A program made the position numbers and the translations under genes. A stretch of DNA of 64,000 bases from Fimbriosthenelais zetlandica (Eukaryota). The notes under the pieces are model-generated. The model saw nothing but the letters and a program-made list of their open reading frames with translations, ran no database searches and had not been told where the DNA came from. This document shows, one piece after another, positions 5,662 to 64,000 of this stretch. The first letter of the stretch is position 1. Each line of letters begins with the position of its first letter. The DNA lies in the NCBI GenBank assembly GCA_977030845.1, contig OZ365118.1:19654001-19718000 (forward strand), given 5' to 3'.

Positions 5662-8600
5662 CTAATGAATGTCAAGCCTTCAGTCGGGACGATTGTTCAA
5701 TGTTGTGATCGATCCCAAGTATAAAACAGTCTGGTCACTGATTAAATGGAATTTTTGCAGTAAAACGTCCATCCACCTTCCCCCCTTTAGCAAATTGCAA
5801 GAACAAAAGAAACAGAAGATTTATTGTCTTAATTACAGTTTGCAGCAGGTTTACTTTGCCGGGGAGAAAATGAGGTTGGCCACCATTCCCGCCACGACAT
5901 AGAGCCATTTATTTTGGGCGGGGATCATTTTTTTCTCCTCCCACACTTGAAGTCGGGCAGAGCAACCAGTAGGGAATGAGTGTGAGTAGAGTCACCTCCT
6001 ACTGGTGGGTCAAAGTGCCGCCATAAACTAGATGGTAGATGACAGTCGCCTAAGTCGATATTAAGGAGGATATTGCCTGTTAGGAACCCTTCTATGATGG
6101 GGTATATTAGCTCTGTATCACCCTGCACGGACAGTATTGATGAAGTATATCACTCATTGTCTCTGACACCTTTCTCTCCCATAGACAGCCACCATATATA
6201 TATATCATTGTATTCAATGTCTTATTTTCCCTATGTCCATTAGAAAGGACACGTATGATTAAAATTTGATATTTTCAGACGATCTGCATCTGTCAATAGA
6301 GATGTGGAGATGACTTTACTGAGAGTATGAGGCACGGATTGATTGTCTTTCTGGCGTCTTCCTCTAGCAATACGTGGCTTATTTATGTTAATACAGCCGT
6401 GTACGATGACAATAGTATAAAAACCCTCCCTCATCGACCTTCCTCCATTATCATTCTAAATCCCCAGCCAGTGTCAACACCCCAGTATTTGTCTCCAGCC
6501 AGAAATCGCATTTTCATTTTGAAAGCCAAGTTGCTTTTTTTGGTGCAGAGCAAACTGACAGGAGTCGGTGGTATGTTTGGTGAGGTAGGGAATATCCGGG
6601 ATGTTACGTACGGGGCATGGGGAAAGGTGGAGGGAATCCAGCATAGTAAAGCCTTATCACCTCCTATCATGCTTCAATGCTACCATTAAATGAGAGTAAG
6701 AAGAACCGTGGAGCATTAGTAGGCTAATATTCACATCATGTTAGATTGTTCTCACTGCTCCTCACATCACCAGACTCCGTGTAGTGTCATGATTCACCGC
6801 TAGGTGATTACTGGTGAATTATAGTGAGATAAATACCCGGCCTGCAATATGCTGCCCATATAATCACCTGTATGCTGCCAGCTTCCCTCAACACAATGTG
6901 CTCGCCTCCAATCCCATATTGTACTTTGAATTTCAAATTACCTACTACCTTATTGCCTTTATTGGCAAGCCATATGGCCTTACTGCATAGGTATAGCGGT
7001 TTTGTCTCTCTCTCTTAATATCCATTGTGCATGATTCAAACTTATTTCATGTGTGGAATATACATACATGTATACCCCCCACACAGTTATAATTAAATGT
7101 TTTACGTTTTAAGAGGTGAGAAGATGTGACATTATTCATGACCGTAAAACCCCAGCTTAACACTAACCCTCACAAGTCACTTGTTCATCCCCTGATTATG
7201 CTCCCGCCGATATCCTCCCCCACCAGCCCTAACAAAAAATCCATCCCGACTAAGCTCTTATTTGTTTTATGTCCACCCTTGATACCTCGCCGCACCCCGG
7301 CCATTCCCCGGCCATTGCCCGCTCCTTCCCATGGGAAACAATGGCCGGTAAAGTGTGGACACGGCCAGCCGTGCATGTCAATGACATGCTATAACTCCCA
7401 ACCTATCATCAAAACGGCCGCCCATCTTAAGAGTTCATCAGGTTTTGGGGTCGCCCTGGCAGCAGCTTGAAGATTCCAGGATAGCATCTCCCTGCTGCTG
7501 GCCGATTGTCCAGACGCAATTTCCTCTGACAAATTGCTTCAGCATTGGTATCCGACTTTTAAGAGGCCATGCTCTGACTTGAGCTCAGCATAAAGTAGGC
7601 TCATGTAAATCAGTGAAAAAACCTCCAAGGCTGGGTGCTGGGCTGTCTGGCTCACCGAGCCTACACTTCCCACTGACTGATGTATGAAAAACCAGCTTCA
7701 TACATGTCTAATGCCATGCCTCATGAATAACACGTCCTCCACATTATAGACTGGTATCCCATTTATAATTGATACCATCACAGACTGCCTGCCAGCCATA
7801 TAATTGCTCTCTACTGCTATCTGTGTCATTTACTAAGCTTAGAGATACTTAATAGTCCCACTCAGTCAACCCATGCATTTCAATCCGCCCCTTGATCATT
7901 GATGTGACATTTACCATAGGCTTCTATAGGCTCTCTGTGTCTCTACAATAGCTCATGGCATCTATGTATGTAAAGTCCTGGCTGTGAGCAGCTCTTGGTT
8001 TGGCAGACAGTGGGACAGCACCAGCTCTGCCCAGATGTTAGAGACAGGAACCGCCCCAGGCTATCCCACTGATGGCCAGGCTGGGTATAGATACATGGTG
8101 AAGGGTGGAAGGACAAAAGCGTGTTGGCAAGCAGCTCCACATACCAGACTTTGAAGTCTAGTCAATGCTCAGGCTGTTTTCCAAACCATTAGGTCTAAAA
8201 CTTATATATAGAGCTTAATATCTGGATATTTTTGTACTTTTGACACATGTATGCCAGACTTGCCAAAAATGGGGAAAAGGACATAATATCACATGTAATT
8301 TGTGCTAGAAATCTACAGTGAATGCATCAGAAGTTGAAATTATTCTTGACTTTCTGAGTTACTCATTATTCCTAAGCATGCAAAATGCCAGAAGCTTCAT
8401 TATTGTAATAATGACCCCAGCCTCCTATAGGATGAATAGTACCTTGTGACTATTGCATAAATTGAGAGCCCTATAGAAACCCTAAAATAGCATGAATGAT
8501 GGTGGCACAAAAGTCCTGAGACCCATAAAGAGTTAGACCCATTCACTCCGTCTGCTCGGAGCAGAAAGCGCAGGAAAAAATGGGGGTAAAGCATGTGAGG

Positions 8601-43609: not shown

Positions 43610-45019
43610 CTAACTCATGTTATAGAGTGGCATGGCGGCTATAGCAGCTATAACTCCCACCATTGTAAACTCTAGTAATCTCATGGCAGTCTGATAACCC
43701 AGCCAGTACCAGGAGTCAGCCACCCCGGACTCAGACTCACACACCCTGAGAGCAGCCAGGAGGGTGAGCAGAATGTTAGACAGTGACAGTAGGAAGAACA
43801 CTCCCGCTGAGAGTAACACTAGTTTAGCTGCTATAGGAACCTTAGCTTCCACCGGGTCCTTTATACTGGACAGTCGCCTCCTCATCTGCTGTTTCTCACT
43901 CAGTTCAAACTCTATCTTAAAGCTCTCGTCTGATTCCCCACCCTCTTCCTGCTCTGAGATGGCCGCCATCTTGGGGCAGGCCTCCTTATCGTTGGTGGGA
44001 CAGAAGGGCTTGGTGCTCTGGGTGGAGGTCTGAGAGTCAGTACTGCATCCACCTGGACTAGTCACTGTCACTGACAGCGGTGACTGTAGTCTGTCAGGAC
44101 TGTTCATGTTCTCCTCCATGCTCCCGTTCCTCTCTATCATGGCCACCTCACTCTGTTTGTCCATCATGTCCTCTGGTTTTGAACCAAACTCCTCCTTCCC
44201 CCCGTTCCCCAGTAGTTGGCCGTTGCTGCAGCCTACACCTTTACCCTTCCATATCACCTTACTCATCCTGTTAAGCTTAACCCGGGTGAGATAGATTCTG
44301 GAGAAGAGTCTGAAGAAGAGGAACATATAGCATCCTGAGGCAGCCAGGCCAAACACAATGAAGTAGAGTTGACATATGAACTTATACAGTGAAGTCCCCA
44401 TTACGTAACTGACTACAATATCTGTACTGACGACCACTAGAAAGTTGATAGTGATTAACGTGATTAAAAACACTGGGTGTAGTAGGTACTCTGATAAAGT
44501 CAGAGCCTGCATCCTGGTCACCTTCACCAGAGCCACATAGACGAGTAGAAAGGCGGACAAGATGAAGGGATCAAAGGTGTGGAGAGTGATGAGAGATAAC
44601 ACTAGTGGTATATTGCCTGTTGAATGGTACGGATCTGAGAAGAAGTGGATGGTCCGAGTTAACCCACAGCCCAGCAGTAATAACTGGAGGGCTAGGTAGT
44701 ACGGTTTAGCCACTGAATCCTTTATTCTGATCACCTTAATGAGGTGGATCAGGGATATAAGGAAGAGGAAGAGGAAGACAGTAGCTGTGGTGTAGTTATG
44801 TAATCCCCAGGGCACACCACAGTCTCTGACCAGCACAGTCCAGTTAGGTTCAGGTCGGAGGTACCAGGGTCGCTCTCCTACCATACCCATACCCTCAGCG
44901 AATGTCATCACATCATAGTTCTCAGTGGGGCTGAACATCTCAGGTTCTGATTCGGGTTCTGATGAGGGGTAGTCCTTAAGGGCCGTCTCCACTTCAGCCT
45001 CCCCCCGAGCGTCCTCCAT
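43610..45019 (-). CDS. Intronless multi-pass (about 7 TM) membrane protein, PRRT3/PRRT4-like, 469 aa
   Basis: Long ORF with good start context and seven hydrophobic segments. WGLHNY...; TRTIHFFSDPY; ...RLLEFTM resemble remembered PRRT3/4-family motifs. Long acidic/Ser-rich loop between TM5 and TM6. Confidence 0.75.
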   Translation of the reverse strand: MEDARGEAEVETALKDYPSSEPESEPEMFSPTENYDVMTFAEGMGMVGERPWYLRPEPNWTVLVRDCGVPWGLHNYTTATVFLFLFLISLIHLIKVIRIKDSVAKPYYLALQLLLLGCGLTRTIHFFSDPYHSTGNIPLVLSLITLHTFDPFILSAFLLVYVALVKVTRMQALTLSEYLLHPVFLITLITINFLVVVSTDIVVSYVMGTSLYKFICQLYFIVFGLAASGCYMFLFFRLFSRIYLTRVKLNRMSKVIWKGKGVGCSNGQLLGNGGKEEFGSKPEDMMDKQSEVAMIERNGSMEENMNSPDRLQSPLSVTVTSPGGCSTDSQTSTQSTKPFCPTNDKEACPKMAAISEQEEGGESDESFKIEFELSEKQQMRRRLSSIKDPVEAKVPIAAKLVLLSAGVFFLLSLSNILLTLLAALRVCESESGVADSWYWLGYQTAMRLLEFTMVGVIAAIAAMPLYNMS

Positions 45020-47711
45020 TATGGCTGAGGTTTTTTTGTCCTTGAATAAGAAAAGTGGAAATATTTAGGAGAAACCTTGACGCACTGTGACATTATATGA
45101 TCTTATTGCTAATGATATAAGGAGTTCTATAATAATAGGTGACATTTTCCCCTAAAGTTAAATCTAAAATATATTATTGACAGTGATCGACAGGCCCATC
45201 GGAATTTAACTATCCCTGCTTTGCTAATCTTTAAATGTGATTATAATATGTAAAATAGTCAAATAAGTTTGTGTTTTGTTTGAGAATTTTAAACTAACCT
45301 GTTGTCACTGCTGGCTGTGTTCAGGTGACTGAATGTTTTAGCTTCATCTTCCCGTCAGACAGGGGGCGAGTCGTCTACACACCCTATAGATAAATACAGA
45401 CATGTCATTAACGCATACCCTTTATCCATATTAATCTACGCTTAATGCTTATTATCTAAGCTTAAGCTAAGATTAAGACTTGTGATCTGAACTTAAGCCT
45501 TTTTTGATAAGCTCCTACATTGATAATCATTGATTATTATCTTAACACCAAAGATTACCACATTACATTGCAATTGCTGACATATATTATGAAATTATGA
45601 TGAAGAGCTTCCCAATGTACTGCAGCACACTCCCACACACCTACACACACTACCTCTTATCACTTATAGGATTCTCGGGAACAGATATATTCAGGTGTAA
45701 ATAAAACCAATTCTTGGCAATGTTTAACTTAGTCTACCTCTCCCTCACCTCAACAATCTTATCTCTCACACATCCTTGTATGTTTCTGGGATAAAAGATA
45801 CCCAAAATATAGTCAACAACCAACCTCCATGTTCAATGTTACATCCAAATACATGCCCTTATGAGGTAGGATCCTCTATATGGTAGGATCCTCTATATGG
45901 TATCCTATGGGTATATGACACTACCAGGTTCACCCCGAATGCCTCTGTGTACAAACGTTGTTTTGGAACTTGTAACAAGACACTGACTTATAATTAGTTG
46001 TAATCCTTTGTTTGTCATGCCATATGCCCTCCAAACACATGTCATGGAGAGCTTCCACTGGTAATTTTAGTGCTAAAATGGAACACTTTCAGTCTGTGAT
46101 TCCTTTTAGATTGATCAGTCTCACATATGGCCACTTGGTTTACATATTTACAGAGTTAGTAATCAACTAACTTTATATATAGTAGGGTCAGGGTTACCAC
46201 ACTCTCAGCTTTATTGGTGATACGAGCACCGTGTGTGAATGTTTGACATATGCGGGTCTGTTCCATATTCACAGATACCGTAAAACTACAAGTAGCAATT
46301 TTTTTTATACATTATATATTTATTTTTCCCCCTGTGTCTTTAAAGTGCACAGAAATACATCCTACATGTATCCTATCTATTTCCTTAAGGAAAATAATTG
46401 ATTGGGTTTAAACCTTTTTCAAGCAATTATCTTTGTCAATATTTGTGCAACTATATCAAGATTTACGGTAGATGTAATAGGTATTGCCCCACGCATCGTG
46501 CTATAAACACAAACACAATATCAGATGGCTGATATCAATGATTATTGATGTCATAAACTTTGTTACACTCCACCTACTGCGGTTTTTACAAATACTTACC
46601 AAGTTTTAGTATCTCCTTTAGTGGATATTCTATTTATATCTACAGTTCTGCAGTAATTCTCTGAATAATTCTGGTCCTTGACATGCCCCTGGTAGTTGTA
46701 CCTTTTCTACACTTCTTGTGAAGCTTTTTGTTCCACTTTCAAAGCTAATGACGCAGTTGTAGGTAATTAATGAAGCACCCCAGGCATTATATAATGTCTA
46801 TGATGATTAGTCTATATAACAGAGCATGACTAACCTGTTTTAGGGCTGTCGTCAGTAGAAGGTAATCCAACATGTGTACCCGGGTAAACTATTCCAACCC
46901 TCATCCACACAGCACCACAATATGGGTCATTGTTAAGCCCCTTCGTTAGAGAGGTGACATAAAGGGACAGGTGTGTTGAAGGCCATCCCCGCCCCCCTCC
47001 CCCCTCCCCCCTCCCCCCTCTTATACTCACATTGCCATGGCAACCATACCTGAGGGACACCTACTTTTTAAGACCTTTGTGTCAAAGTATGTCTTTTACG
47101 CATGAAAAACTAAATAGAAAATACAATGTTTTATGAATGGACTATCCATTTTAAACCTATACATTGTATTAATATGATTACATTATGCTAAATATCTTGA
47201 CAATATTAGGCAGCAAACCCGGAGGAATAATTGTCCCAGCCTCAAGACAGAATTTAGTGGAAGGTTCTCCCCTATAACAACAGAGGGCGCCACTGTCTGT
47301 CAGAGATCTCGTTATATGATTGTATTGATCATCAGTATTCATAAAAGCCGTGGGACCATGTTATATTGACCACCAGTAATATTGCACCAGGCCTGACAGA
47401 CGAGTTATTACCACTAAACACACACTAAGCCATTACACCTTATTAGTCTTTATTGATCTGAAATTTTCTGTTTAATTCTCCTCCTCAGATTACATATTAG
47501 TTCAAACATTAAAGAGTTGATCAAATCCCTGATCACAGCCTTTGTTGTGAAAGGTACATAGTTTCCTTGGACGGCTATACAATTTGATCCCTTCAAGGAT
47601 ATTACTCACTCAGGCAACCTGCTCAAGTTTGAAGCATTCAGCAAATACTATATATACCAGATAGACTGCCTATAACAACCAACTCAATCCCAGACCGATC
47701 ATTACATCAAA

Positions 47712-49930: not shown

Positions 49931-52900
49931 TCATTGCCATCCTATGGCAGCATGGCAGATAAGGAGGTAGACCATGGCTATCATTACAGTCAGTATCATA
50001 GTAGGGAAGCCAATTCTGAAAAACAACAACATCTATCATAGAATATCCGCTGAGTACTGTCCTGAAGAAAGTGAATTGCGATAAGACAAAGCCTTACTTA
50101 AAGAAACCCCAGAAGGTGAACTTATGTCCATGAGTATCTGCTATTCCTGCACACACCACATTAGCTGAAGCACCAATTAATGTCCCATTCCCTGAAAAAA
50201 GTTCATAAAATGTTTGAAAATGGTGTCATTATTGAAGGATTCAGAAGGGAATGAATTTTCTCACCTCCTAAACAAGCTCCAAACGCCAGGGACCAGACCA
50301 GGGGTTGTACAGGTAGGTTCACAGCGGGGTCACCTGATAGCTTCACGATCACTGGTAACTGTGAGCAAAATAGTCACTAGTTTGTTAATATGATGATATG
50401 AGGAAATCATTGGTTTATTAATTAAAATTTAAACCATTCCTTCCATGCCCACTACAATTGTTTCCCTGATCTTAAGCATGCAATCTATGAGTACTCATAC
50501 GTACTGTCAGTACTCGTATTATTCTACAGTTGATAGTCTGAGTGTACTAAGTAGTAGAACTGACCATGGCTGTAGTGAATGGAATGTTGTCTATAAAGCT
50601 TGAACACAGAGCTGATGTCCACAGGATGACAATGATGGCTACAGCCAGACGCTGGCCTTCAGGGATTGACGTCACCCAGCCTGTCACCTGAGTCGTGATC
50701 CAGTCTATCAGGCCTAGCTGAGTTAGGGCCTGGGAAAAAAAAAACAAGCCTTAAATTAGATACACATTAAGCTGTTTCTATATGTCTTATTGATAAAGCA
50801 TTGCAGCAAGAAAGGCCAATGATTACGGTAGCAAAATATACAATGTTGTCTTGCTAAATTGATGACAGCCTACCTTCATTAAGACAAATAATGAGGAGAA
50901 GAAGATGAGAGTTGCCCACTCAATCCTGTGTAAAATACTCTCAAAATCCGAGTAGTCAGCAAGTATTACCAGACATAGCGCCCCCAGTACAGGGATCCAT
51001 CCTGTAAAGTACCATAGTATACAGTTAGAGCTTATAGTGATATCTTCGGAAATAACAGACAAATTCAAGCCGATCTTATCCTTCCTGACCTAGGCTGATA
51101 TAATTTGGTCCAACGATGGAAGTTATAAAGAAACCAATGATGACAGCGACAAGAACTGACATAGACTTCACCAGTAATACGGGGTCTCTTATCTTATACT
51201 GAAAATAGAGGGAAAAGGCTGTATTTTCATCCAAATTGTCAGAATGAAATTTGATTTCAATTAGATTGGAATGACCTTACCCGTCTCTCCATCTCTTCTA
51301 GCTGTAGCTTGTAGAACTCGCGCTCACTCTCACTCTGTTGTTTAAACTTCCTCTTGACACGTCGCTCTATGTTGGTGATCTTCTGTTCTAACATGTCCTT
51401 CACTTGCTTCTCTTCTCTGGAGGCGACTGTGATTTGAGACGATGCTCGCCTCCAGATCTCAGCCTCATGCTGCAAGTCTGAACGCAATCACAAAATGATG
51501 AGAAGTTAAGTCGAAACGAGTGAAATTTAGTTGAGAATCTAGCTCCAGATCTTGATGGTGAAGGCATTAAATATTAGGAGAAAATTTGGTAAATTTTAGT
51601 GGGAGAATTGATTTGTTATACCTGCTACTTCGCGAGGTACACCTCGATGAAGTAAGACTTTCCTCCTGTAGATGAACCTGAGCATAGCATAGGCTCCAAT
51701 AGCACAGAAGACACTCCCAATAAACATGTGGAGAGTAAAGTTACCAAAGCCTATACCCTGAAAATGGAATGAGTGGAACCTAAGACTGGTTTATCCATTT
51801 CCTGAAGTTTCAATGAACTAAAGCAGTCATATGTTGGAGATCTGATTGAGTTGGAAGTTTTAATGTAACTTACACTATCGATGATGTCTTTGTTGGACAC
51901 TATGAGAACATTAGGAGGGTCTCCTATAGCTGTGGCAGCGCCACCAATGTTGGAAAAGAGAACTTCTGCCATCAAAACGTGCTTTGGGTCGATGTCGAGA
52001 ACTTCACATAACCTGAGAGAGGATAAATGGCAGTGAATATTGTTGAAATTATGTTGAGAATGTTACTGAACTTACTGTCAAATATTTTACCTGATTGTGA
52101 CAGGAGAGAGAAGAAGTATGGTTGTGACATTATCAAGAAAGGCTGAGATAATAGCTGAGAAAGTACACAGAGTGGTGATGAGTGGCCATGTCTTCCCCTT
52201 AGCTAAACGATAAGCCTGAAATCACGAATAAATAATGTGACAGATGACAGATTACAATTTAATATTAGAAATGATGAAGCAGTTTAATATGTTTTATATA
52301 TTGATTGCACTGACCTGTAGAGCTAGCCAGTCAAAGACTCCCGTATCGACCAAGATGGCGACCAGTACCATCATCCCGAATAGTAAACACAGGGTCTCAT
52401 AATCCAGCCAGCTGATCACTCGGTCTAGAGGGGGTTTCTATAACAAATGAATGAAGACCTGGCTGTATTTGAGCAGTGTACCTTCATCAGGGATTTGGGA
52501 AGGCATAGTCTGTCTATGACAAATCGTAACACTATAGTCTAACAGAACATTGTTTAGACCAAAAATTTATTTTTGAGAAAAATGAATCATGATAATATAC
52601 CTCGTTCGTGGAAGCCAGTAGAGCTATAGCAACAAGAGCCCCCAACATGGCGGCCATAGTCCGGTGGATCAACTGAAAATAAGTCTCATACTTCATATCT
52701 TCCTTTAAATGCCATTGAAAGGTGTTAATTGCCATGATTTGTCTGTGTGAGGTTGTTATAAATACTCACATCAAATACAATGAGTACATAGACAGCCACT
52801 AGTGTACAGGCAGCAGCTATCACTCCAAATTCCACCTGGTAGGACAAGGGGACAAAGAAGATGGAGATGGGGCGAGGGTCGTCCGAGTTAGATCCTACTT

Positions 52901-53234
52901 CAACATTGTAAATCTCTGCTACCCTGAAAGAGTGGGAACACCTAAGTCAGACTCCTTCATATGAAAACCCTAAAGTCCCTACTGACTTTTAAATAGGGAT
53001 GCTATTGACAATATTAATTGGGATGTTTTGATATTGTTCACCCACATTTCGTCCTCAAAATCTATCTTCATTTCTTGTACGACTTCAGGGGCATCTTCTT
53101 CTTCATTTGCAAAGACTATCGCTCTTTCCTGAAAGTAGTTTCAACGTCTATATTCTTGCTCTTCACTTTTCACACTCTTCCTTACACATTCTCTCACTCT
53201 CTCATATCGCCTTTCTCTCTCACTCTCTCCTCTC

Positions 53235-53276
<42 letters not shown>

Positions 53277-54400
53277 ATCTCTCTCTCTAACTTACCCTGG
53301 TTGTATTTGTGGCGGGGTTAGTCACTCTGACGATCACATTGTTGGTGAGTCTATGAGGAGGTCTGTAGCTCAGTTTGCCTTTGATGAAGAATTTTAATAC
53401 CGGGTATCTGTTGTGGTTATCAACCATGAGATCTGTAAGAAGTGGGAGATAGATGGGAGACTAGATTGAGATTGAGACACGACCAGATTCACAACTTTAC
53501 GGACAGAGGTAGATGGGACAGAGAGTGGAGATTGAAAGCTTGAAGATCTCCCCATCTCTGGTCCTAAAGATAACCTGGATCTCTGTGACCAATGGTCAGC
53601 TGGTACCTTATTTCATCAAGTAAGCAACTGTTGAGTAATACTTACCATGACTTTGTGTGCTTGATACTGAGAACTGTTGCCATTCAAATATCATATCAGG
53701 ATAGCAGGAATAGACAATCTGAATGAAGAAAAATATATCATTTAATCTGATTTCAGCTTTACTTTGTGAATTGCATGTTATGGTATTCCATAGTGATATA
53801 GAAATTTACATTACTCACTGAGAATGAGAGTGCAACTGCAAAAAGAACTGCAATTTTCACGTTCTTTGCAATCCAAGTGATTTTCTCTTTTTTGCTACGT
53901 GATTGGGGAAATTGTTGGAAGTCGTCCTCAAACCATCCGGCTCTGTTTAATAAAAAGACACAACAATTGGAAAAACAATATTCCAAACTTGATATAGGCG
54001 TATATATCGCCTGCAGTGTATTAATTGATGCCTCCATGACCAGACTGCCAACGCGTCTGGTTGCTTGCAGTTTTCTTGTCATGCAACTTCAGAAACTTCT
54101 GAAAACGTGGTGCACAAGAAATTGATCAAGGTCAGATTAAATTACCAGGGCCGAAAAAACGCTCCAGTCTTATGCTCTAGGCATAAGTAATAATATTGCT
54201 TACTTGGTGGCAGGTAGTAGAGGCGTGTTCTCATCCACCCCGTGCTTCTTATACAGGGATTGCTCTGACATGCTTCTCTTCCTGGAGAATGGAGGACGGT
54301 GGGCGGGGTGGCCTGGAGGACTGTACTCTGTAGTCATCACCTGCACCTCACCCCTCCACTCCTCATCCTCCACACTGCTAGGTTTATTCTCCATCTCCAT
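49931..54400 (-). CDS. OCA2: P protein / OCA2 (ArsB/NhaD/CitM-fold anion transporter), 18 exons, about 744 aa
   Basis: Exons 54400-54204, 53942-53819, 53718-53646, 53432-53296, 53128-53046, 52923-52770, 52672-52601, 52437-52315, 52215-52091, 52012-51874, 51757-51622, 51477-51281, 51198-51090, 51001-50874, 50729-50565, 50358-50265, 50191-50098, 50015-49931; phase-consistent, 2235 nt. Motifs: [63 protein letters not shown]-terminal ENTPLL. Confidence 0.93.
53180..53290. repeat. (CT)n microsatellite in an OCA2 intron
   Basis: Long imperfect CT/TC run. Confidence 0.9.
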
Positions 54401-56102: not shown

Positions 56103-58961
56103 TTATACATACCGTTGAAATGTTGCTCTTTTCACCACCAGTGTCATGAATGGCGTGCATTTCATGAGGTCTATTATAAAGGAGGTATCTTCCTTGGTTA
56201 AGTCTACTCCATTACACCACAGTAATGTGTCCCCCACCTCCACTTCCCCTGACCGTGCACACACTGATCCCTCAAATATAAACTTAATATAATGATATTG
56301 ATCACCAGGGTAGCGCGGTCTGTTCTTTCCAGAGACGAATTTCAGACCCCATCCCTCCTTGACGCCTCTCTGGAGACATACTGTCACTCTCCTTGTTAGG
56401 ATCCTACCTTGGGACCTGATTCCCATGGTCAGTTGAGTTCTGGAGTTGAGTATTTCCTGTATGGCTTCAGGGAAGGACATGTTGTCACAGGGTTGACCAT
56501 TGATGACAGAGATGTGTTCACCATGACACATGTTACCCTCCACCTCCGCTACACCTCCAGGTGTGACTTCAGTCACCTGGAATAAAGTTGATCCCGTCTG
56601 AGGTGCGAACTGGAAGCCGAAGGTGCTCCCTCTGGTGCTGAGAATGACGAACCTCGTACACAATCCCGGCTCCAGGACGGACTCTGTCAATACAAAATAA
56701 GAGTCCAGTTTTGAGGCCTTATTGAGATTGTAAAATGAAGTGAACATGTTGATTTTAAGTCTTTCTATGGGTTTTCTGGACATACCTTGGCTTGGAAAGT
56801 CAGACATTTCTCTTGGTTCATTCATTGTTGAACTTCTTAATCGAGGCATAACCTTTGGTTTTGCTTCTTCCCTATTAGCAGCTGAAAGAAGACCTTGACT
56901 TGGAAAGTCTGACATTTCTCTTGGTTCCTTCATTGAAGAACTTCTTAGTCGAGGCATAACCTTTGGTTTTGCTTCTTCCCTTCGATCAGCTGGAAATAGA
57001 TGTAACAATAGAAGAAGCCATGAAACAAGATTGATAAGGAGAATTGATAAACAATCCCTACACATCTTTCCTCAGAAATAGGAGAATGTTTAACCCAATA
57101 TACTGGAGTAAATAACGTTAGTGTGATTAGATAAACTGACCATTGTCCAGGCTGGAGTCCATTGACTTCATCTGTTTTACTCCGTCTGGTCGCCCCGTCT
57201 TTCTAACCTCTCTCTTTATAAAGTCTTTACTGGTACCGTCCATGTATAACACCTCATTAAGTCCACCCTCGTCTGTTGACCTGTTATCAGACATATACTC
57301 CCCATCTGACAGTGAATAGTAAGACATTTCCATCCCTGATCTCGCTCCTCTGGAGCAGAAAGACAACACATCAGAATTCTCCATAGCTGAGACATTACGC
57401 TTGAGTCTAAGTTCAGCATTGACATCTTTTGATCTTCTTGAAGATCTTCTTTGAACATTGTCACTACTTTCACTCTCACTCCTCATAACCACACTTGTCC
57501 TCGTTATCTCGTTTTTTGTATCGACCAGTTGAGCATCTTGATCATTCTCCTTGTCACTAAACTCAGCACTGACTCCTATATTACATTCGCACGATTGTAT
57601 CTCTGAAGTGCTCTTCTCGTCCGATGTGATATTTTTGAAGCCACAATCTGGCTTTGATTCTAAGTTTGACTTCATCTCATTTTTAGTTTCACCCAGTGTA
57701 GCATCTAGATCATTCTCCTTGTTGCTAAACTCAGCACTGACTCCTATATTACATTCACACGATTGCATCTGTGAAATGCTCTTCTCATTTGATGTGATAT
57801 TATTGAAGCCACAACCTGAGTTTGACCCTGGGTTTGACTCAGGGGTTGACTCTGGGGTTGACTCTGGGTTTGCTGGCCCTGGCTTTGATAGAGGATTGAG
57901 TTTACCATCGTCCTCACCAGACTCTAGTAAGTCTGTCTCACTGAGTCGCTTCTCTATGAAGTCAGTGTCTGACATCTCAACAGGCTGAGACTCATCACCA
58001 GCATCCAGCGCACACATTCTCTGTTTGGAGAATTTCCTCCGCTTTTCGCTGGCGATAGCATACTTGATTTTATCCACAATGAATCCATGTCTGAGGGAGA
58101 GAGCGTCAAAGAAATTCTGTACGAATCCTGGGCGATCAGATGTGATGATTTTATCAAGTAACCTGCAATTACAATACAACAAAATGTGAAAAAGAATGAC
58201 TTTTTCCTCCACTTTATGACTAAAGTATTTCTTTTTATTTCTGGAGGTGGTTTCTACCCATCAGATATTGCCAGTTCTCTGTATTAACCTCTACACATGT
58301 ATATATTCTGACATAAGCTGGCTATATGGACCTCATTGGTATTTGGTGCGTATCAAAGTAAGGTAAAATAGTAGTTTTATGTCAGTATTGCTGCGTAAGC
58401 ATGAAATTCTATACTCTCTGTCTCTATAGAGATTGTATCTATTATCTAAAATACGATCTAAACTAAGTACATATCAATTACACTTTGAGTTGTGAACTTG
58501 ATATGTAAGAGAGGTCTAAATTCAGGTGGTGCTACATCTAGCAAGTGAGGGTATATGAATGATATTATACCTTCTCACTTTCTCGGCTGTCGTATCACCC
58601 AGTCTGATACATTCCACCTCCTCGTAGCTGAGAGCATCGCATGAGATCAGTCTGTCTATGATGGGTCGTATCTCTACATTCTGTACGATGTAGTCGTACG
58701 ATCGCTGTAAGGCCTTACGTTCAGTGTCTTGTGCTGAAAAAGTATGCATAGAATATAGTGAACATGCTTTGTACATGTTTCGTTATTCATTTAAAAGTGC
58801 TCAGAAGTTGTCCAAATGTTTCTACGAATAGTCATTCCCGACCAAATGAAATATAAATATGACATCTAGCTGTTTGTATAGTTTATAGATATATGAGTGA
58901 AGCATGGTTTAGATATTAGTTATTTGTGAGAATACGTACATTTGTTCCAGCTGCAATCCAT
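56103..58961 (-). CDS. CARD (death-fold) domain + acidic disordered linker + two C-terminal PDZ domains, 5 exons, about 663 aa
   Basis: Exons 58961-58940 (accATGG), 58733-58571, 58162-57141, 56989-56786, 56683-56103; phase-consistent, 1992 nt. CARD: ALQRSYDYIVQNVEIRPIIDRLISCDALSYEEVECIRLGDTTAEKVRRLLDKI...FFDAL. PDZ1: TFGFQF...VTEVTPGGVA...HGEHISVING. PDZ2: GWGLKF...IFEGSVCARSGEVEVGDTLLWCNG. Confidence 0.85.
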
Positions 58962-59954
58962 GGTATCAGTGATTATAGCCTTCCTCCCCTCGTCTCTATC
59001 GTTTCTCTGGTTATACTTTAGTTCCCAGGACGCCCTCACATTAATGATACAACTATGATTGTGTCTTCCAGGATGAATGTCTTTCCTCAAAATCACAGAG
59101 CATGTCAAACACTCCCTGGAATAACCTCCAAAGCTTGATCCTTACTGATTCAAACGTTCAATAACAAAGAAATATCCCAACGTCTGAATATTTAGTATCT
59201 GCTTTCACGACTTGGGACAAGTTTGAACTGTTGGTAGTTGTAGATGATTCAAACTATGATGTCTTGTAAATCAGAGGGTGGGAGAGTCACGGTCCGAATA
59301 CGGTGCTCGTGACTGCTGGTATTACTCGACCGTAGACTTGATATACATTACTATAGCAAAAACTTAACCCACATAATTATATGTTACTAGGTGCGCAATA
59401 CATCGATCCTTTTCTTTTATTTCTGTGTCGTTCTCTCTAGTAGGGGACTGTCAGATAGAACTTGGACAATCTATACATATTTAACGCTAAAGATGATTTC
59501 GTTCAGTGCTACTTTACCACTGGTATTAGGAAATGTATTAATTTTTCTTTCCATGGTTTACTGAGGACTATGACTTGCAGGTTAAAGAACAGGGGGATCC
59601 CCTTCATAGTCATAAATTTATAATTATAAATACCATAATACCATAGTTCACTTAAAATCTGATGTTTCTATTTATAAATTCTAACATCATGCTTTTCTTA
59701 TAATTTGCCCTGCAGAATGGAAATTGGTCTAATGTTTTTCTACTCTCTTTCAATTGACATAGAATTAAAATGGGATGGGCTGGCCATATCCCAGCCATGC
59801 ATGCCTCCCACCACCCATGCATATCACTACAGGGAGTATATTGTTTTTATACATGTACATTTTATACCTTTATGTCATCTTTAATATATGACATCATTGA
59901 CTCATAGTTTGAAAGTTTCGATTCGAGGGAAAACCAGACTGGGAACTGGTGATT

Positions 59955-61736
59955 CTATATACTTCCTTGTTGCTCTACAGGGATCCATCCAGGCCTTGGA
60001 ACGGGGGCGGGGGGGGGGGGGGGTGGAGTTGTTGTGTAATCGATAACTTCAGAAAGTTTAAGCAATCTTTTCCCGCATTCTAATTGGATCTTAATGATAG
60101 AATAGGGAAAGTATAAAGGCATGTGAAATGCAATACAGACAGTGTATCGGTCTAATCGCCCCCCCCGCCTTTCAAAGCCCATCAAAGCTGATATCAGTTG
60201 ATCCTGCTCCAGATAGGACCTTTTTTAATGGAAAGTTCAATATTTTATTTTTTAAATCTGGGAATATTATATTAACACCCTGCTGGGGTATAGCCTATAC
60301 ATCACACCTCCTGTGTGAGGAGGACTATAGCGTCTACCTAAACCCAAGCTTTCTGACATATTGCACTTTTTTCTGGCTACCATGAACCCTCCTTCTACCT
60401 CAGGTGTTTATATTCTGAGCGTCCACCCATCACCTGCCAACACGGGTAAAAGGTCATATCACCGCAGAACGCCAAATATTTCTCATTTCTTCTTGTACCC
60501 TCATTTTTCTTGAAAATTATGTATGCGAGGATATTCTATTGGTTACCCATCCTCTTCAGATGTCCCTTTGGACATTCCTCCTTCTAAATTCAATTTAATG
60601 TCTATCCCAAATTTGTCTTCCTGGTCCTAGTTCCATGAAGCGCCGTTGAAGGCGCCACCTTACACCTCTCTCAGCCTTGCTGTGAATGGTTTAGCCACCA
60701 CTATTTCTGCCACCACCAGCCCCCACCACCTCCCACCTCCACTGCCACCACTCTCCCTGAGGGGGAGTGGTCCACTACCATTACACCACCGCTCACGACC
60801 GTGTCTTCTCTACTTCAAGACTCTACCATGACAACTATTAACCTGCACCTCTGTCTCTGCAAGTTGCGTCTGTAAAATGTATTCAACAGCAGACATTTAA
60901 CGCACTTGCTGGGCAGTGCTCGCTCCATTGCAGCAGTATTAGAGCATCTTTAAGCTGGGGTGGGAGGCTGGGAGGTATTACTAGCATCCTTCACTATAGA
61001 CAGGACCGTCAGTCTTCAAGATGGGTGAAGCGTCCTAACACAGGAGGACCAGAGCACGTGGGAAATCACTCACTCTGCCATTTATCTTGCCTGGAATAGA
61101 CCTACAGCAATGAGCTGCTCAATGCAAACAAGCATGGCAGGGTGAGTTACCCAAATACCGGATCAAATCATACTCATATGATTGTGTTGCCTTAGGGGAT
61201 TTTGTACATATTGGACATACACTTGTACAAATATTATTCATTGTAGACATATGTATGCTTGTTGAAAGGTGCTCATCCAAGCAAAAGCAACAGTTTTTAT
61301 CATTACAAATGTGGGATCGTGTTCTGAGAACCCATGTGTATGACTGATGTAAATGTTGCATTTCATCTTACAAAATATCAAAGACAGAGGACATGACACT
61401 GCCAGGGATCTTAATGCATCATAAAAAGGAATATTACTTAGAAAATATCAAGCAAAAATGAAGGCAGAAGAAAGCCCTGTGTGATGTATAGAACAGCTTT
61501 GTGAGGTGAAGCTAGAAGTTAAAGATGCGTGTATTAAGGATGGGAGGAGGAGGAGGAGGGGTATGGCCTGGTCCGCCTGGAGGAGACCAGGATGAGAGAC
61601 TGTGTAGTAGGCCTGTATGTAGGAGTATGGTGTGGAGGGGGAAGCACGTGTTGAAGGCCCACCTTACCCTACTCTCCCTGCTCGTCCTGGGGGTCGGCGC
61701 CAGGGTGGTGGTCGGGGCGGAAAAACCCAACAACAT
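59955..61736 (-). CDS. Tentative small multi-exon gene (about 128 aa) ending in a poly-Pro/PxxP tail
   Basis: Hand-built phase-consistent chain: 61736-61668, 60869-60843, 60626-60547, 60508-60463, 60337-60308, 60089-59955. Two donors are weak (GTGATA, GTGTGA) and I recognise no homology. Confidence 0.2.
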
Positions 61737-64000
61737 GACCAGGTGGGAGTCCCGAGGAATTACACTCACTCTTTTCTATTCCTAATAGTTAAACCAGAGT
61801 ACTCTCTTGTACATACTTACTTGAATTATCTGCTATTTTTATTAGAGTTTCCGCAATATTTCACTCGTATGCACAGGCTTAATTAGATTATACTTATTCC
61901 TATTTAGAAATATTCCATTTTTCACCCATTAGAGTATGATTTCCTTGCTCTTCCATTTTAATCTTCTTCAGGTAATTTAACTCGCTTCCTTTTTGTTTTC
62001 TCATCCAAATATATTGCAATATTAAGTTTCTGAAATTGTGACGGATGATCGACACTTTTCCCATAAGTTTCAATATCTCCATTTTAATTTCTCAAGAAAA
62101 CAGCTTGAGCTAATAAAAGCTGGAGTTTAATTAGGATAATTAACGGTAAAACCTGCCGTCTGTCACCTCAATTAACTCACGAAGAGGAAGTCAAGACCTG
62201 AGCTCATTCTAATTAATAATCTCTTCCTCGTTTTGCGTCTGGAACTCTGGATATTACTTTATTATTAAATCTGTTATTTCCATCAGATTCTTTCACCAGA
62301 GGCAGTTTTCATTGTAGTCTATGGAGGAGTATTAAGCTGTCTTTGGTATGCCCGGCGTATCAGCCACCGACCCACTCTCTATTCCATATTGCTATACAGA
62401 CAGATGGGGGAAGCCATCTACTCCAGTTTCGTCTTCGTAGACCTATACGACTCCTTAAATATTAAGTCTGGCTTCATTCCAGAACCAAATATGAAGCCAT
62501 ATCTGTATATGGCTTCGCTGTATATGGCTTCAGCAGCCATTTCAGCACCTCATACATATTAGACAGTTATAGCTTCATCCCAGTCCTATCTTCATCACCA
62601 GATCTAGGGAAGCCATGTTTTCTACACCTCTCCTAATGAAGTGAAGTGGTTAAGAGTTGTATTGTAGAAGCCAGGACAGAGTATGTAGGAGATTAATACC
62701 TTCACTTGCTCCCAGAGTAAGAAGGAACTCAGTAATGAGCTCCGAATAGCTTCACCGCCATCTTGATTGAATGCCTGTAATGTGGCTCACCTCTGACCAG
62801 CAGCTCTCAGCTGAAAGTCCGGGATTACCTCATCAATTCATCACAAGACATGTCTTCTTTAACGTTAATCTTTATCATTGATTTACAACCAGGACTAATT
62901 TCCTGTATGCTCCAGTCCAGGAAATTTATACTCCTATTGATATGGTTGTGTATGCAGTGACCATACATAGTTAGGGAGCGGTGTTTTCCACCAGGGTGGA
63001 TGTTATATAGACTTGATCTGATTTTGGAGGGAAGTGAATGGATCCAAGGCTAACAAGAGGCGGTGGTATGGGGGGGTAATAGATACAGGTTCTACCCTCC
63101 ACCCCGCTGTTATAGATTACCAGGGGCATTAGACAGGGGCCTGGAGTGTGAGCCTGTCTGGTCGGCGGCTAGGCCTGCTCTGGTGTGCCTAATTATGTAA
63201 TCAATTAAGACTTGTTTGGTCAGCTCTCAGGGCTTAACCAGAAATCATCATGTCTCACAGACCCTGATAAATATAACTCATGTTTATATTGCCAGGAATA
63301 TTGGTAACCTAGTACCTCTTTTACGGTCCAAAGTTTGAAAATCCGAAATATAATATTCAGACTAATAAAGCAGAATTGCAGCAAAGTAATTGCCGGAACT
63401 TTTTTCGGACATTCTGCTGGCAATCAACTACCCCTAGCTTATATAGGATCTATAGACCTGTATGATCCAAAAGATAACCTACATTTTCTGCTTGGGTAGG
63501 ACTTGGTAGGATCAACAATGTGCCTGTATAGGTCATTTACGTGTCATTTGGCCACATCTTGCCGTGATAACAGACACCATATTGATTTACAGGTGAATGC
63601 CTCTCAGCTATTTGACCATTGATTTTACATATCACCGGCCCTGGCAATACTCACATATACTGAGAGTACAATAGTTTATTCCAGCTCACAAGTATGATGT
63701 ATTGTATTCACTATCCCTACTCATCCCCCTATTCTGTCCCTTCATCCACCCAACCCATTCCTTCATCCCCTCTTCCATCACCCACTTTTTCCCTACATAT
63801 TTTCTCTTAAATCTTTTCATTTTCACAGCCTTTCCTCCCCTGACGATATATCTATCATACAGTAGCTGTATAGTGGTGGAGGCTGAAGTATCTAGAATTT
63901 TCCACCTCCTGACACTGTCTCAGTAAATGGCGATCATTTCCACCAGCAGCAGCCATACAAGGCCCGCTATATACGGAGAGACCATACAACATTTATACCC

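Follow-up and report, generated by a model that had tools for sequence, protein, structure and literature searches.

A predicted CARD-linker-PDZ-PDZ gene in Fimbriosthenelais zetlandica and two further CARD-PDZ genes in the same genome

Background

Can a CARD and a pair of PDZ domains be joined in one animal protein that carries none of the other modules of the known CARD-PDZ proteins? The question is raised by a locus in a stretch of 64,000 nucleotides of Fimbriosthenelais zetlandica DNA (GenBank assembly GCA_977030845.1, contig OZ365118.1, positions 19,654,001 to 19,718,000), hereafter called the window. An original prediction, made from the letters of the window, had placed there, on the minus strand at 58961-56103, a gene for a CARD-linker-PDZ-PDZ protein. 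All coordinates below are window positions unless another contig is named. To our knowledge, the known proteins with both a CARD and PDZ domains are CARMA and DLG5, and both of these also contain a coiled coil, an SH3 and a GuK domain. DLG5 is made up of a CARD, a coiled coil, four PDZs, an SH3 and a GuK. In the literature, we found no use of the term 'CARD-PDZ' or its variants and no MAGUK-free CARD-PDZ protein; the work retrieved concerned CARMA, DLG5 and MAGUK proteins only. The CARMA (CARD-MAGUK) fusion arose in jawed vertebrates according to Staal et al., who report for invertebrates only CARD-coiled coil (CARD-CC) proteins without MAGUK modules (PMC5978004).

We consider it likely that the gene is real as one unit, from the CARD to the PDZ pair. 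On balance, we also favour the reading in which this one gene encodes a cytosolic scaffold, composed of a CARD, a Ser-rich disordered linker of 360-390 residues and a C-terminal PDZ pair, that would link CARD signalling to PDZ ligands. The pairing itself is unusual, and what is new here is that a MAGUK-free CARD-PDZ plan is found at three loci of one genome.

Results

Gene structure

The DNA surrounding the locus is of animal type, with short GT...AG introns. Joining of the GT/AG-bounded exons by a script yielded one open frame of 697 residues, or 663 if a further, in-frame intron of 102 nt is taken out. Putative exon 1 (58961-58940) consists of an ATG and 7 codons, with the start in an ACCATGG context and a donor AAT|GTACGT. 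No Pfam match was found in the open reading frame (ORF) around it, and in-frame ATGs of the CARD exon, at 58776 and 58749, are alternative starts; the two related genes described below, on C29 and C10, start in this way. Exon 2 (58733-58571, phase-2 donor AG|GTATAA) encodes the N-terminal half of the CARD, that is, helices 1-3 and the start of helix 4. Exon 3 (58162-57141, phase-1 donor AATG|GTCAGT), an open frame of 340 codons, encodes the C-terminal half and about 295 residues of linker, and exon 4 (56989-56103), which follows a polypyrimidine-AG acceptor, encodes the end of the linker and the PDZ pair. The TAA stop codon (56105-56103) lies 7 residues past the last PDZ strand, so that the predicted protein ends in ...ATFQRYV. 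The three introns are 206, 408 and 151 nt long, each GT...AG, and have a G+C content of 31-33%, compared with 41-49% for the exons.

A fourth intron is probably present at 56785-56684. This stretch of 102 nt has the form GTATGT...polypyrimidine-ACAG, is in frame and free of stops, and has the G+C content of the other introns (33%, compared with 41-48% in the flanking exons). Exon 4a (56989-56786), which holds linker repeats, would precede it, the gene having 4-5 exons overall, and retention of the stretch would add 34 residues. For the exons, the original prediction stood as regards four boundaries and the joined frame; it had read through 56785-56684.

Since the CARD and most of the linker are both carried by exon 3, the architecture hinges on the single junction 57141|56989. 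The phases match across it, the donor is GT and the acceptor polypyrimidine-AG, and the composition of the stretch removed is intron-like. No poly(A) signal was found in these 151 nt between the linker exon and the PDZ exon. Our confidence in the fusion of exons 3 and 4 is raised because the order CARD-then-PDZ recurs elsewhere in the same genome, as detailed below. The gene is single-copy in the genome, as is exon 3.

Both flanks were inspected for additional domains. From the stop codon to the first exon of the next gene, a CitMHS/OCA2-like transporter gene 1.7 kb downstream, the minus-strand ORFs gave no Pfam match, and no SH3, GuK or IL-1 trefoil was seen; a donor-like GTATGT overlaps the stop codon, and beyond it no domain-bearing ORF lies in this stretch. 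Upstream, over 5 kb of the window, the minus-strand ORFs likewise had no Pfam match, and no extra N-terminal domain was found there. The order CARD-linker-PDZ-PDZ without coiled coil, SH3 or GuK, as it had been proposed, is upheld by Pfam on the ORFs and by AlphaFold2 (AF2) models.

The CARD and its nearest relatives

Once exons 2 and 3 are spliced, a complete CARD is obtained at residues 12-92 (58722-58072), interrupted by the 408-nt phase-2 intron at 58570-58163. Pfam was applied to the exons singly. The spliced CARD was scored by script with a hidden Markov model (HMM) of length 90. This model was built from 11 full-length CARDs, all of them found in this genome and above the Pfam CARD cut-off of 23.9 bits. 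With Pfam CARD (PF00619), exon 2 alone matched positions 2-50 of 85 at 20.7 bits (E 4e-4), or 19.2 bits in the whole-genome scan, and the first 46 residues of exon 3 alone gave no match. With the own-genome HMM, the spliced CARD reached 37.9 bits over positions 3-83 of 90, compared with 21.5 bits for exon 2 alone and at most 7.8 bits for about 1,450 shuffled sequences. The spliced score being far above those of exon 2 alone and of the shuffles, we conclude that exons 2 and 3 form one complete CARD. In the AF2 model of exon 3, the first 45 residues or so form helices with a predicted local distance difference test score (pLDDT) of 71-81; comparison of exon 2 alone with the PDB gave nothing meaningful. 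The claim of an N-terminal CARD split over two exons was therefore confirmed by the spliced score, and a death-fold match is present, through the Pfam half-domain and the own-genome HMM together.

The nearest CARD in the genome, designated L006, lies at C37:21529743, 1.8 Mb away, and has 24% identity with that of the gene (BLASTP E 1e-8). In a CARD tree that is poorly resolved, L006 is the sister of the gene's CARD, with support 88/79. It is located 430 nt upstream of a 756-residue ORF that encodes a NACHT domain (57.5 bits) and a tail resembling leucine-rich repeats (LRRs), and because this NACHT-LRR ORF adjoins it, we regard L006 as the CARD of a NOD-like receptor (NLR). Among PDB entries, L006 matched RAIDD (E 1e-3) and Apaf-1 ahead of CARD11 (E 0.2), all these similarities being weak. 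The relationship of the CARD, weak as the similarities are, points to partners of the NLR or apoptosome type and away from the CARD-CC/Bcl10 type.

At the L006 locus, the CARD exon and the NACHT-LRR ORF are closely preceded by an ORF with a DZIP3-type HEPN domain (79.7 bits; L035:1529-5751, corresponding to C37:21528528-21532750, plus strand). HEPN ORF, CARD exon and NACHT-LRR ORF may be one HEPN-CARD-NACHT-LRR receptor gene.

The PDZ pair

PDZ1 (56633-56418) and PDZ2 (56375-56112) match Pfam PF00595 at 37.7 and 26.0 bits, respectively, both above the cut-off of 23.2 bits. The GLGF-type carboxylate-binding loop is intact in both, as TFGF in PDZ1 and GWGL in PDZ2, and position alphaB1 is occupied by Phe in the former and by Thr in the latter. 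An AF2 model of the pair, built from an alignment of 51 PDZ tandems, shows two PDZ folds with a short connection, at a mean pLDDT of 91.9. Two adjacent PDZs followed by a stop, as originally read, are what these results describe.

PDZ2 carries a DLG-like beta2-beta3 insertion, RPRYPGDQYHYIKFI. In the PDB, its best matches were PDZ1 and PDZ2 of PSD-95/DLG4 (E 3e-14 to 2e-11), followed by INADL, Scribble and DLG1, and no IL-16 chain was present among its 52 matches at E <= 1e-3. Of the two resemblances initially suggested for PDZ2, the one to DLG PDZs was borne out and the one to the PDZ of IL-16 was not. No paralogue of the PDZ pair was found in the genome. Comparison of the model of the pair with AlphaFold Database (AFDB) clusters, using Foldseek, returned only tandems of the DLG/PATJ/MPDZ type, with identities of 24% or less and none named as a CARD protein.

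The linker

From the CARD to PDZ1, the linker is about 390 residues long, or 356 without the probable fourth intron. It is Ser-rich (S 15%) and mildly acidic (D+E 17.7%, K+R 14.1%). Against the earlier description of some 380 residues of acidic low-complexity sequence, the acidity is mild, and richness in Ser is the more apt description. In the single-sequence AF2 model of exon 3, pLDDT falls below 50 past about residue 48, so that the linker is predicted to be disordered. The same model contains no coiled coil, the longest helix after the CARD being of 18 residues and of low confidence. For linker and exon 3, there was no match in Pfam or in sequence databases and no usable match in ESM Atlas.

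Two sets of tandem repeats were found in the linker. The first consists of two copies of a 168-nt unit (57839-57506; 56 residues), each with three conserved Cys (CGF...SCEC), which share 85% DNA identity. The second is a pair of 36-residue repeats, REEAKPKVMPRLRSS[ST]M.EPREMSDFPSQG, at 56784-56891 and 56892-56999, with a unit of 108 nt and 88% identity. Here, the alignment extends into the intron, and the unit takes in the 3' splice site together with the last bases of the intron and the first of the donor. We read the 108-nt duplication as an exon duplication that has turned coding, such that former intron bases are now translated (GLLS) in the predicted protein. The ratio of non-synonymous to synonymous changes (pN/pS) between copies is 0.47 for the 168-nt repeat and 0.30 for the 108-nt repeat, both from small counts; these values suggest that the frame of the linker is maintained. 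We conclude from the repeat sequences that the linker has recently been enlarged by tandem duplication. The inner 108-nt copy retains an acceptor-like TTTCAG, which could be an in-frame alternative splice site (56784-56999).

The whole protein contains only two DxxD motifs, DAGD at residue 115 and DNAD at residue 401, which are uninformative on caspase cleavage.

Other CARD-PDZ genes in the genome

Genome-wide Pfam scans gave 63 CARD and 146 PDZ matches in 447 Mb. A CARD located on the same strand and at most 3 kb upstream of a PDZ was encountered at two places only, the gene under study, on C37, and C29:10209243-10211205, where by our arithmetic about 0.03 such pairs would be expected by chance. 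A third locus was reached from the second: the PDZ that best matches the one on C29 lies at C10:30056127 (37% identity), and the own-genome HMM detects a CARD 1 kb upstream of this C10 PDZ. This C10 CARD is detected by that HMM only, Pfam being blank on the exon pieces. We conclude that the CARD-then-PDZ plan recurs in this genome and is clearly not random. The uniqueness implied for the architecture fails accordingly, two further CARD-PDZ genes being present on C29 and C10.

Both of these are minus-strand genes of three exons. The one at about G000:C29 10209219-10211236 would encode 224 residues, and its scores are 33.8 bits for the first half of the CARD and 25.8 bits for the PDZ (Pfam) and 39.7 bits for the spliced CARD (own-genome HMM). 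The one at about G000:C10 30056094-30057963 would encode 237 residues, with 25.6 bits for the PDZ (Pfam) and 38.2 bits for the spliced CARD (own-genome HMM). The corresponding values for the C37 gene are 20.7 bits for the first CARD half, 37.7 and 26.0 bits for the PDZs, and 37.9 bits for the spliced CARD. In all three genes, a phase-2 intron interrupts the CARD at about position 50, the PDZ exon is preceded by a phase-1 intron, a stop codon closely follows the PDZ, and the beta2-beta3 loop of a PDZ contains the motif PR[WY]..D. The C29 and C10 genes differ from the C37 gene in having a single PDZ and a linker of 30-45 residues, whereas the latter has two PDZs and a long linker. Their PDZs are mutual best matches (the 37% identity given above), and neither pairs best with a PDZ of the C37 gene; PDZ2 has a weak match to the C10 PDZ (E 0.5, 36% over 56 residues).

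Lineage-specific death-fold fusions are numerous in this genome and include, besides the C37 gene, CARD-Bcl-2, Z-alpha with tandem CARDs, and CARD-NACHT. The CARD-Bcl-2 case is located at about 35.771 Mb of C1 (L012:1459-2568, plus strand), where a single frame of 370 residues encodes a Bcl-2 family domain (70.9 bits) behind a CARD (25.3 bits).

Searches for orthologues

A HMMER search with exon 4 against 1.84 billion representative sequences retrieved generic multi-PDZ proteins only, at about 30% identity or less and none with a CARD; the matches came from choanoflagellates, a sponge and contigs of the European Nucleotide Archive (ENA). Exon 3 and an aligned set of the three PDZ exons, used as queries in word-indexed protein searches, gave no match. 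A synteny walk from the two homologues of a neighbouring single-exon gene revealed no conserved neighbours. The protein libraries seem to be poor in close relatives, in that this neighbouring gene has no more than two homologues there, at 36-38% identity.

Neighbouring genes and other observations

The transporter gene downstream (50500-54400, minus strand) is a multi-exon gene of the CitMHS family, similar to OCA2/P-protein, and its first exon has a dileucine-type motif, ENTPLLP. The single-exon gene used for the synteny walk (43610-45019, minus strand) encodes a multi-pass membrane protein of 469 residues; its two homologues, both from the same ENA assembly, are assigned to Pfam PF25987 (PRRT3). 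Stretches with runs of Gly or Pro in translation (GGGGG, PPPPP) occur at 46830-47060, 59888-60185 and 61512-61886 of the window and, in the stretch L033 with the C10 gene, at 5811-5931 and 7863-8015, and are probably an interspersed repeat. In the same stretch as the NLR locus described above, L035:7932-9983 (minus strand) is an open frame of 683 residues with about 8 repeats of F(S/T)TASGK.V.(V/I)SE..L, which we take to resemble the BRC repeats of BRCA2.

Discussion

How might such a protein work? In the scaffold that we favour, the CARD would join homotypic CARD-CARD assemblies, with CARD-bearing NLRs or CARD caspases as likely partners; these are proposed because the closest CARD belongs to a CARD-NACHT-LRR gene that lies on this chromosome too. 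The PDZ pair would dock on membrane or cortical proteins by their C-terminal tails, and CARD signalling would in this way be positioned, or concentrated, at particular sites. The linker may act as a phospho-regulated tether (RRSSRRSK, RLRSS[ST]M). The function would resemble that of vertebrate CARMA, with an origin by separate domain shuffling.

Comparison with known systems gives a similar picture. As in CARMA (CARD10, CARD11, CARD14), an N-terminal CARD and PDZ sequence stand on one chain with a regulatory linker between them, and a membrane-proximal scaffold role in CARD signalling is presumed in common. Unlike CARMA, the gene lacks SH3 and GuK as well as a coiled coil behind the CARD, it has two PDZs instead of one, and its CARD is closer to an NLR-type CARD. 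By this comparison, the gene would lie outside the CARMA family and may nevertheless work in a CARMA-like manner. With DLG5, it shares the combination of a CARD with several PDZs, and a DLG-type beta2-beta3 loop in PDZ2, but it has no MAGUK module other than the PDZs, its domains being the CARD and the two PDZs only. The long, poorly structured N-terminal part and the C-terminal PDZs recall pro-IL-16 and PDZD2; these, however, have no CARD, and the PDB search shows no relation to the IL-16 PDZ. A functional analogy may also be drawn with NLR CARD adaptors such as RIPK2 and ASC, in which a CARD is joined to a second interaction module, although a PDZ pair here takes the place of the kinase or PYD, and an interaction is only presumed.

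Several points weigh against the scaffold reading, or against parts of it. Exon 1, with its seven codons, and the junction of exons 3 and 4 are predictions, exon 2 by itself stays under the Pfam CARD cut-off, and the functional role is deduced from domain identity. The His of class-I domains at alphaB1 is absent from both PDZs. No orthologue was found in protein libraries, in AFDB clusters or by synteny, although with libraries so poor in close relatives, its absence elsewhere is not established. The support drawn from the C29 and C10 genes has its own limits: the CARDs from the three loci do not stand closest to one another, and the phase-2 intron at CARD position 50 or so is common to many CARD genes of the genome. 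For these two reasons, the C37 gene may have arisen by independent shuffling rather than by common descent with the other two, and the shared plan may be convergent.

Could the locus instead hold two genes, a CARD-linker protein ending 5 codons past 57141 and a separately transcribed PDZ-PDZ protein? The frame of exon 3 does close soon after the proposed donor, Met codons occur early in exon 4, and the link between the two exons is a prediction, searches for RNA sequencing runs having listed none. The gap of 151 nt, however, has no poly(A) signal, has an intron-like G+C content, and is bounded by a donor and an acceptor in matching phase; the PDZ ORF has neither an upstream exon nor a promoter of its own; and CARD-then-PDZ occurs with the same intron phases on C29 and C10. 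We consider two genes improbable. The same holds, to our mind, for the view that the locus is a young product of chance exon shuffling, unexpressed or functionless, and thus a nascent or dying gene, which we judge unlikely. Such a product would fit a single-copy gene with no detectable orthologue and with recent tandem duplications reshaping its linker, in a genome with many odd CARD fusions. It is less easily reconciled with a frame of about 2.1 kb that is intact and stop-free, with PDZs that both keep their binding loops and fold confidently in AF2, and with repeat copies in which non-synonymous changes are fewer than synonymous ones, small as the counts are.

The two remaining explanations start from known proteins, and we give each of them very little weight. 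Descent from DLG5 or CARMA, by truncation or divergence with loss of the coiled coil, SH3 and GuK, is suggested by the fact that a CARD with PDZs is otherwise known from those proteins, and by PDZ2, which is most like PDZs of the DLG family. No trace of the three lost modules was seen, though; the PDZ pair has no paralogue in the genome; the CARD groups with an NLR CARD whose PDB matches to RAIDD and Apaf-1 precede that to CARD11; and the CARD-MAGUK fusion has been dated to jawed vertebrates (PMC5978004). This descent appears highly improbable to us. A precursor similar to pro-IL-16, from which the C-terminal PDZ module would be freed by a caspase recruited by the protein's own CARD, would account for PDZs placed behind a long disordered region. 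In invertebrates, cytokine precursors that bear a PDZ and are cleaved by CARD caspases have been described, but they combine the PDZ with an IL-1 trefoil (PMC13736523), whereas no trefoil or other exon follows the PDZs here, IL-16 is missing from the PDB matches, and DxxD motifs number only two. We hardly expect the precursor explanation to hold.

A wider proposal can be built on the CARD-linker-PDZ-PDZ scaffold, and we offer it tentatively, as possible but doubtful. In annelids, independently of CARMA, a small set of CARD-PDZ adaptors would have evolved, by which the CARD signalling of NLRs or caspases is tethered to membrane proteins through their C-terminal tails. With its two PDZs and regulated linker, the C37 gene would be the elaborated member of this set, its partner being the CARD-NACHT-LRR receptor at a distance of 1.8 Mb on the same chromosome.

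At present, the gene is a well-supported gene prediction and not a demonstrated pathway. We know of no case in vertebrates in which CARD signalling is joined to PDZ scaffolds other than within large MAGUK proteins (CARMA, DLG5). If the scaffold reading is true, the minimal CARD-PDZ design found in three genes would be a second, independent anchoring of death-fold signalling to membrane proteins, and would offer a simple system for asking what PDZ anchoring contributes to CARD assemblies. With this design, the picture of heavily shuffled death-fold domains in the immune repertoires of invertebrates gains a further case.

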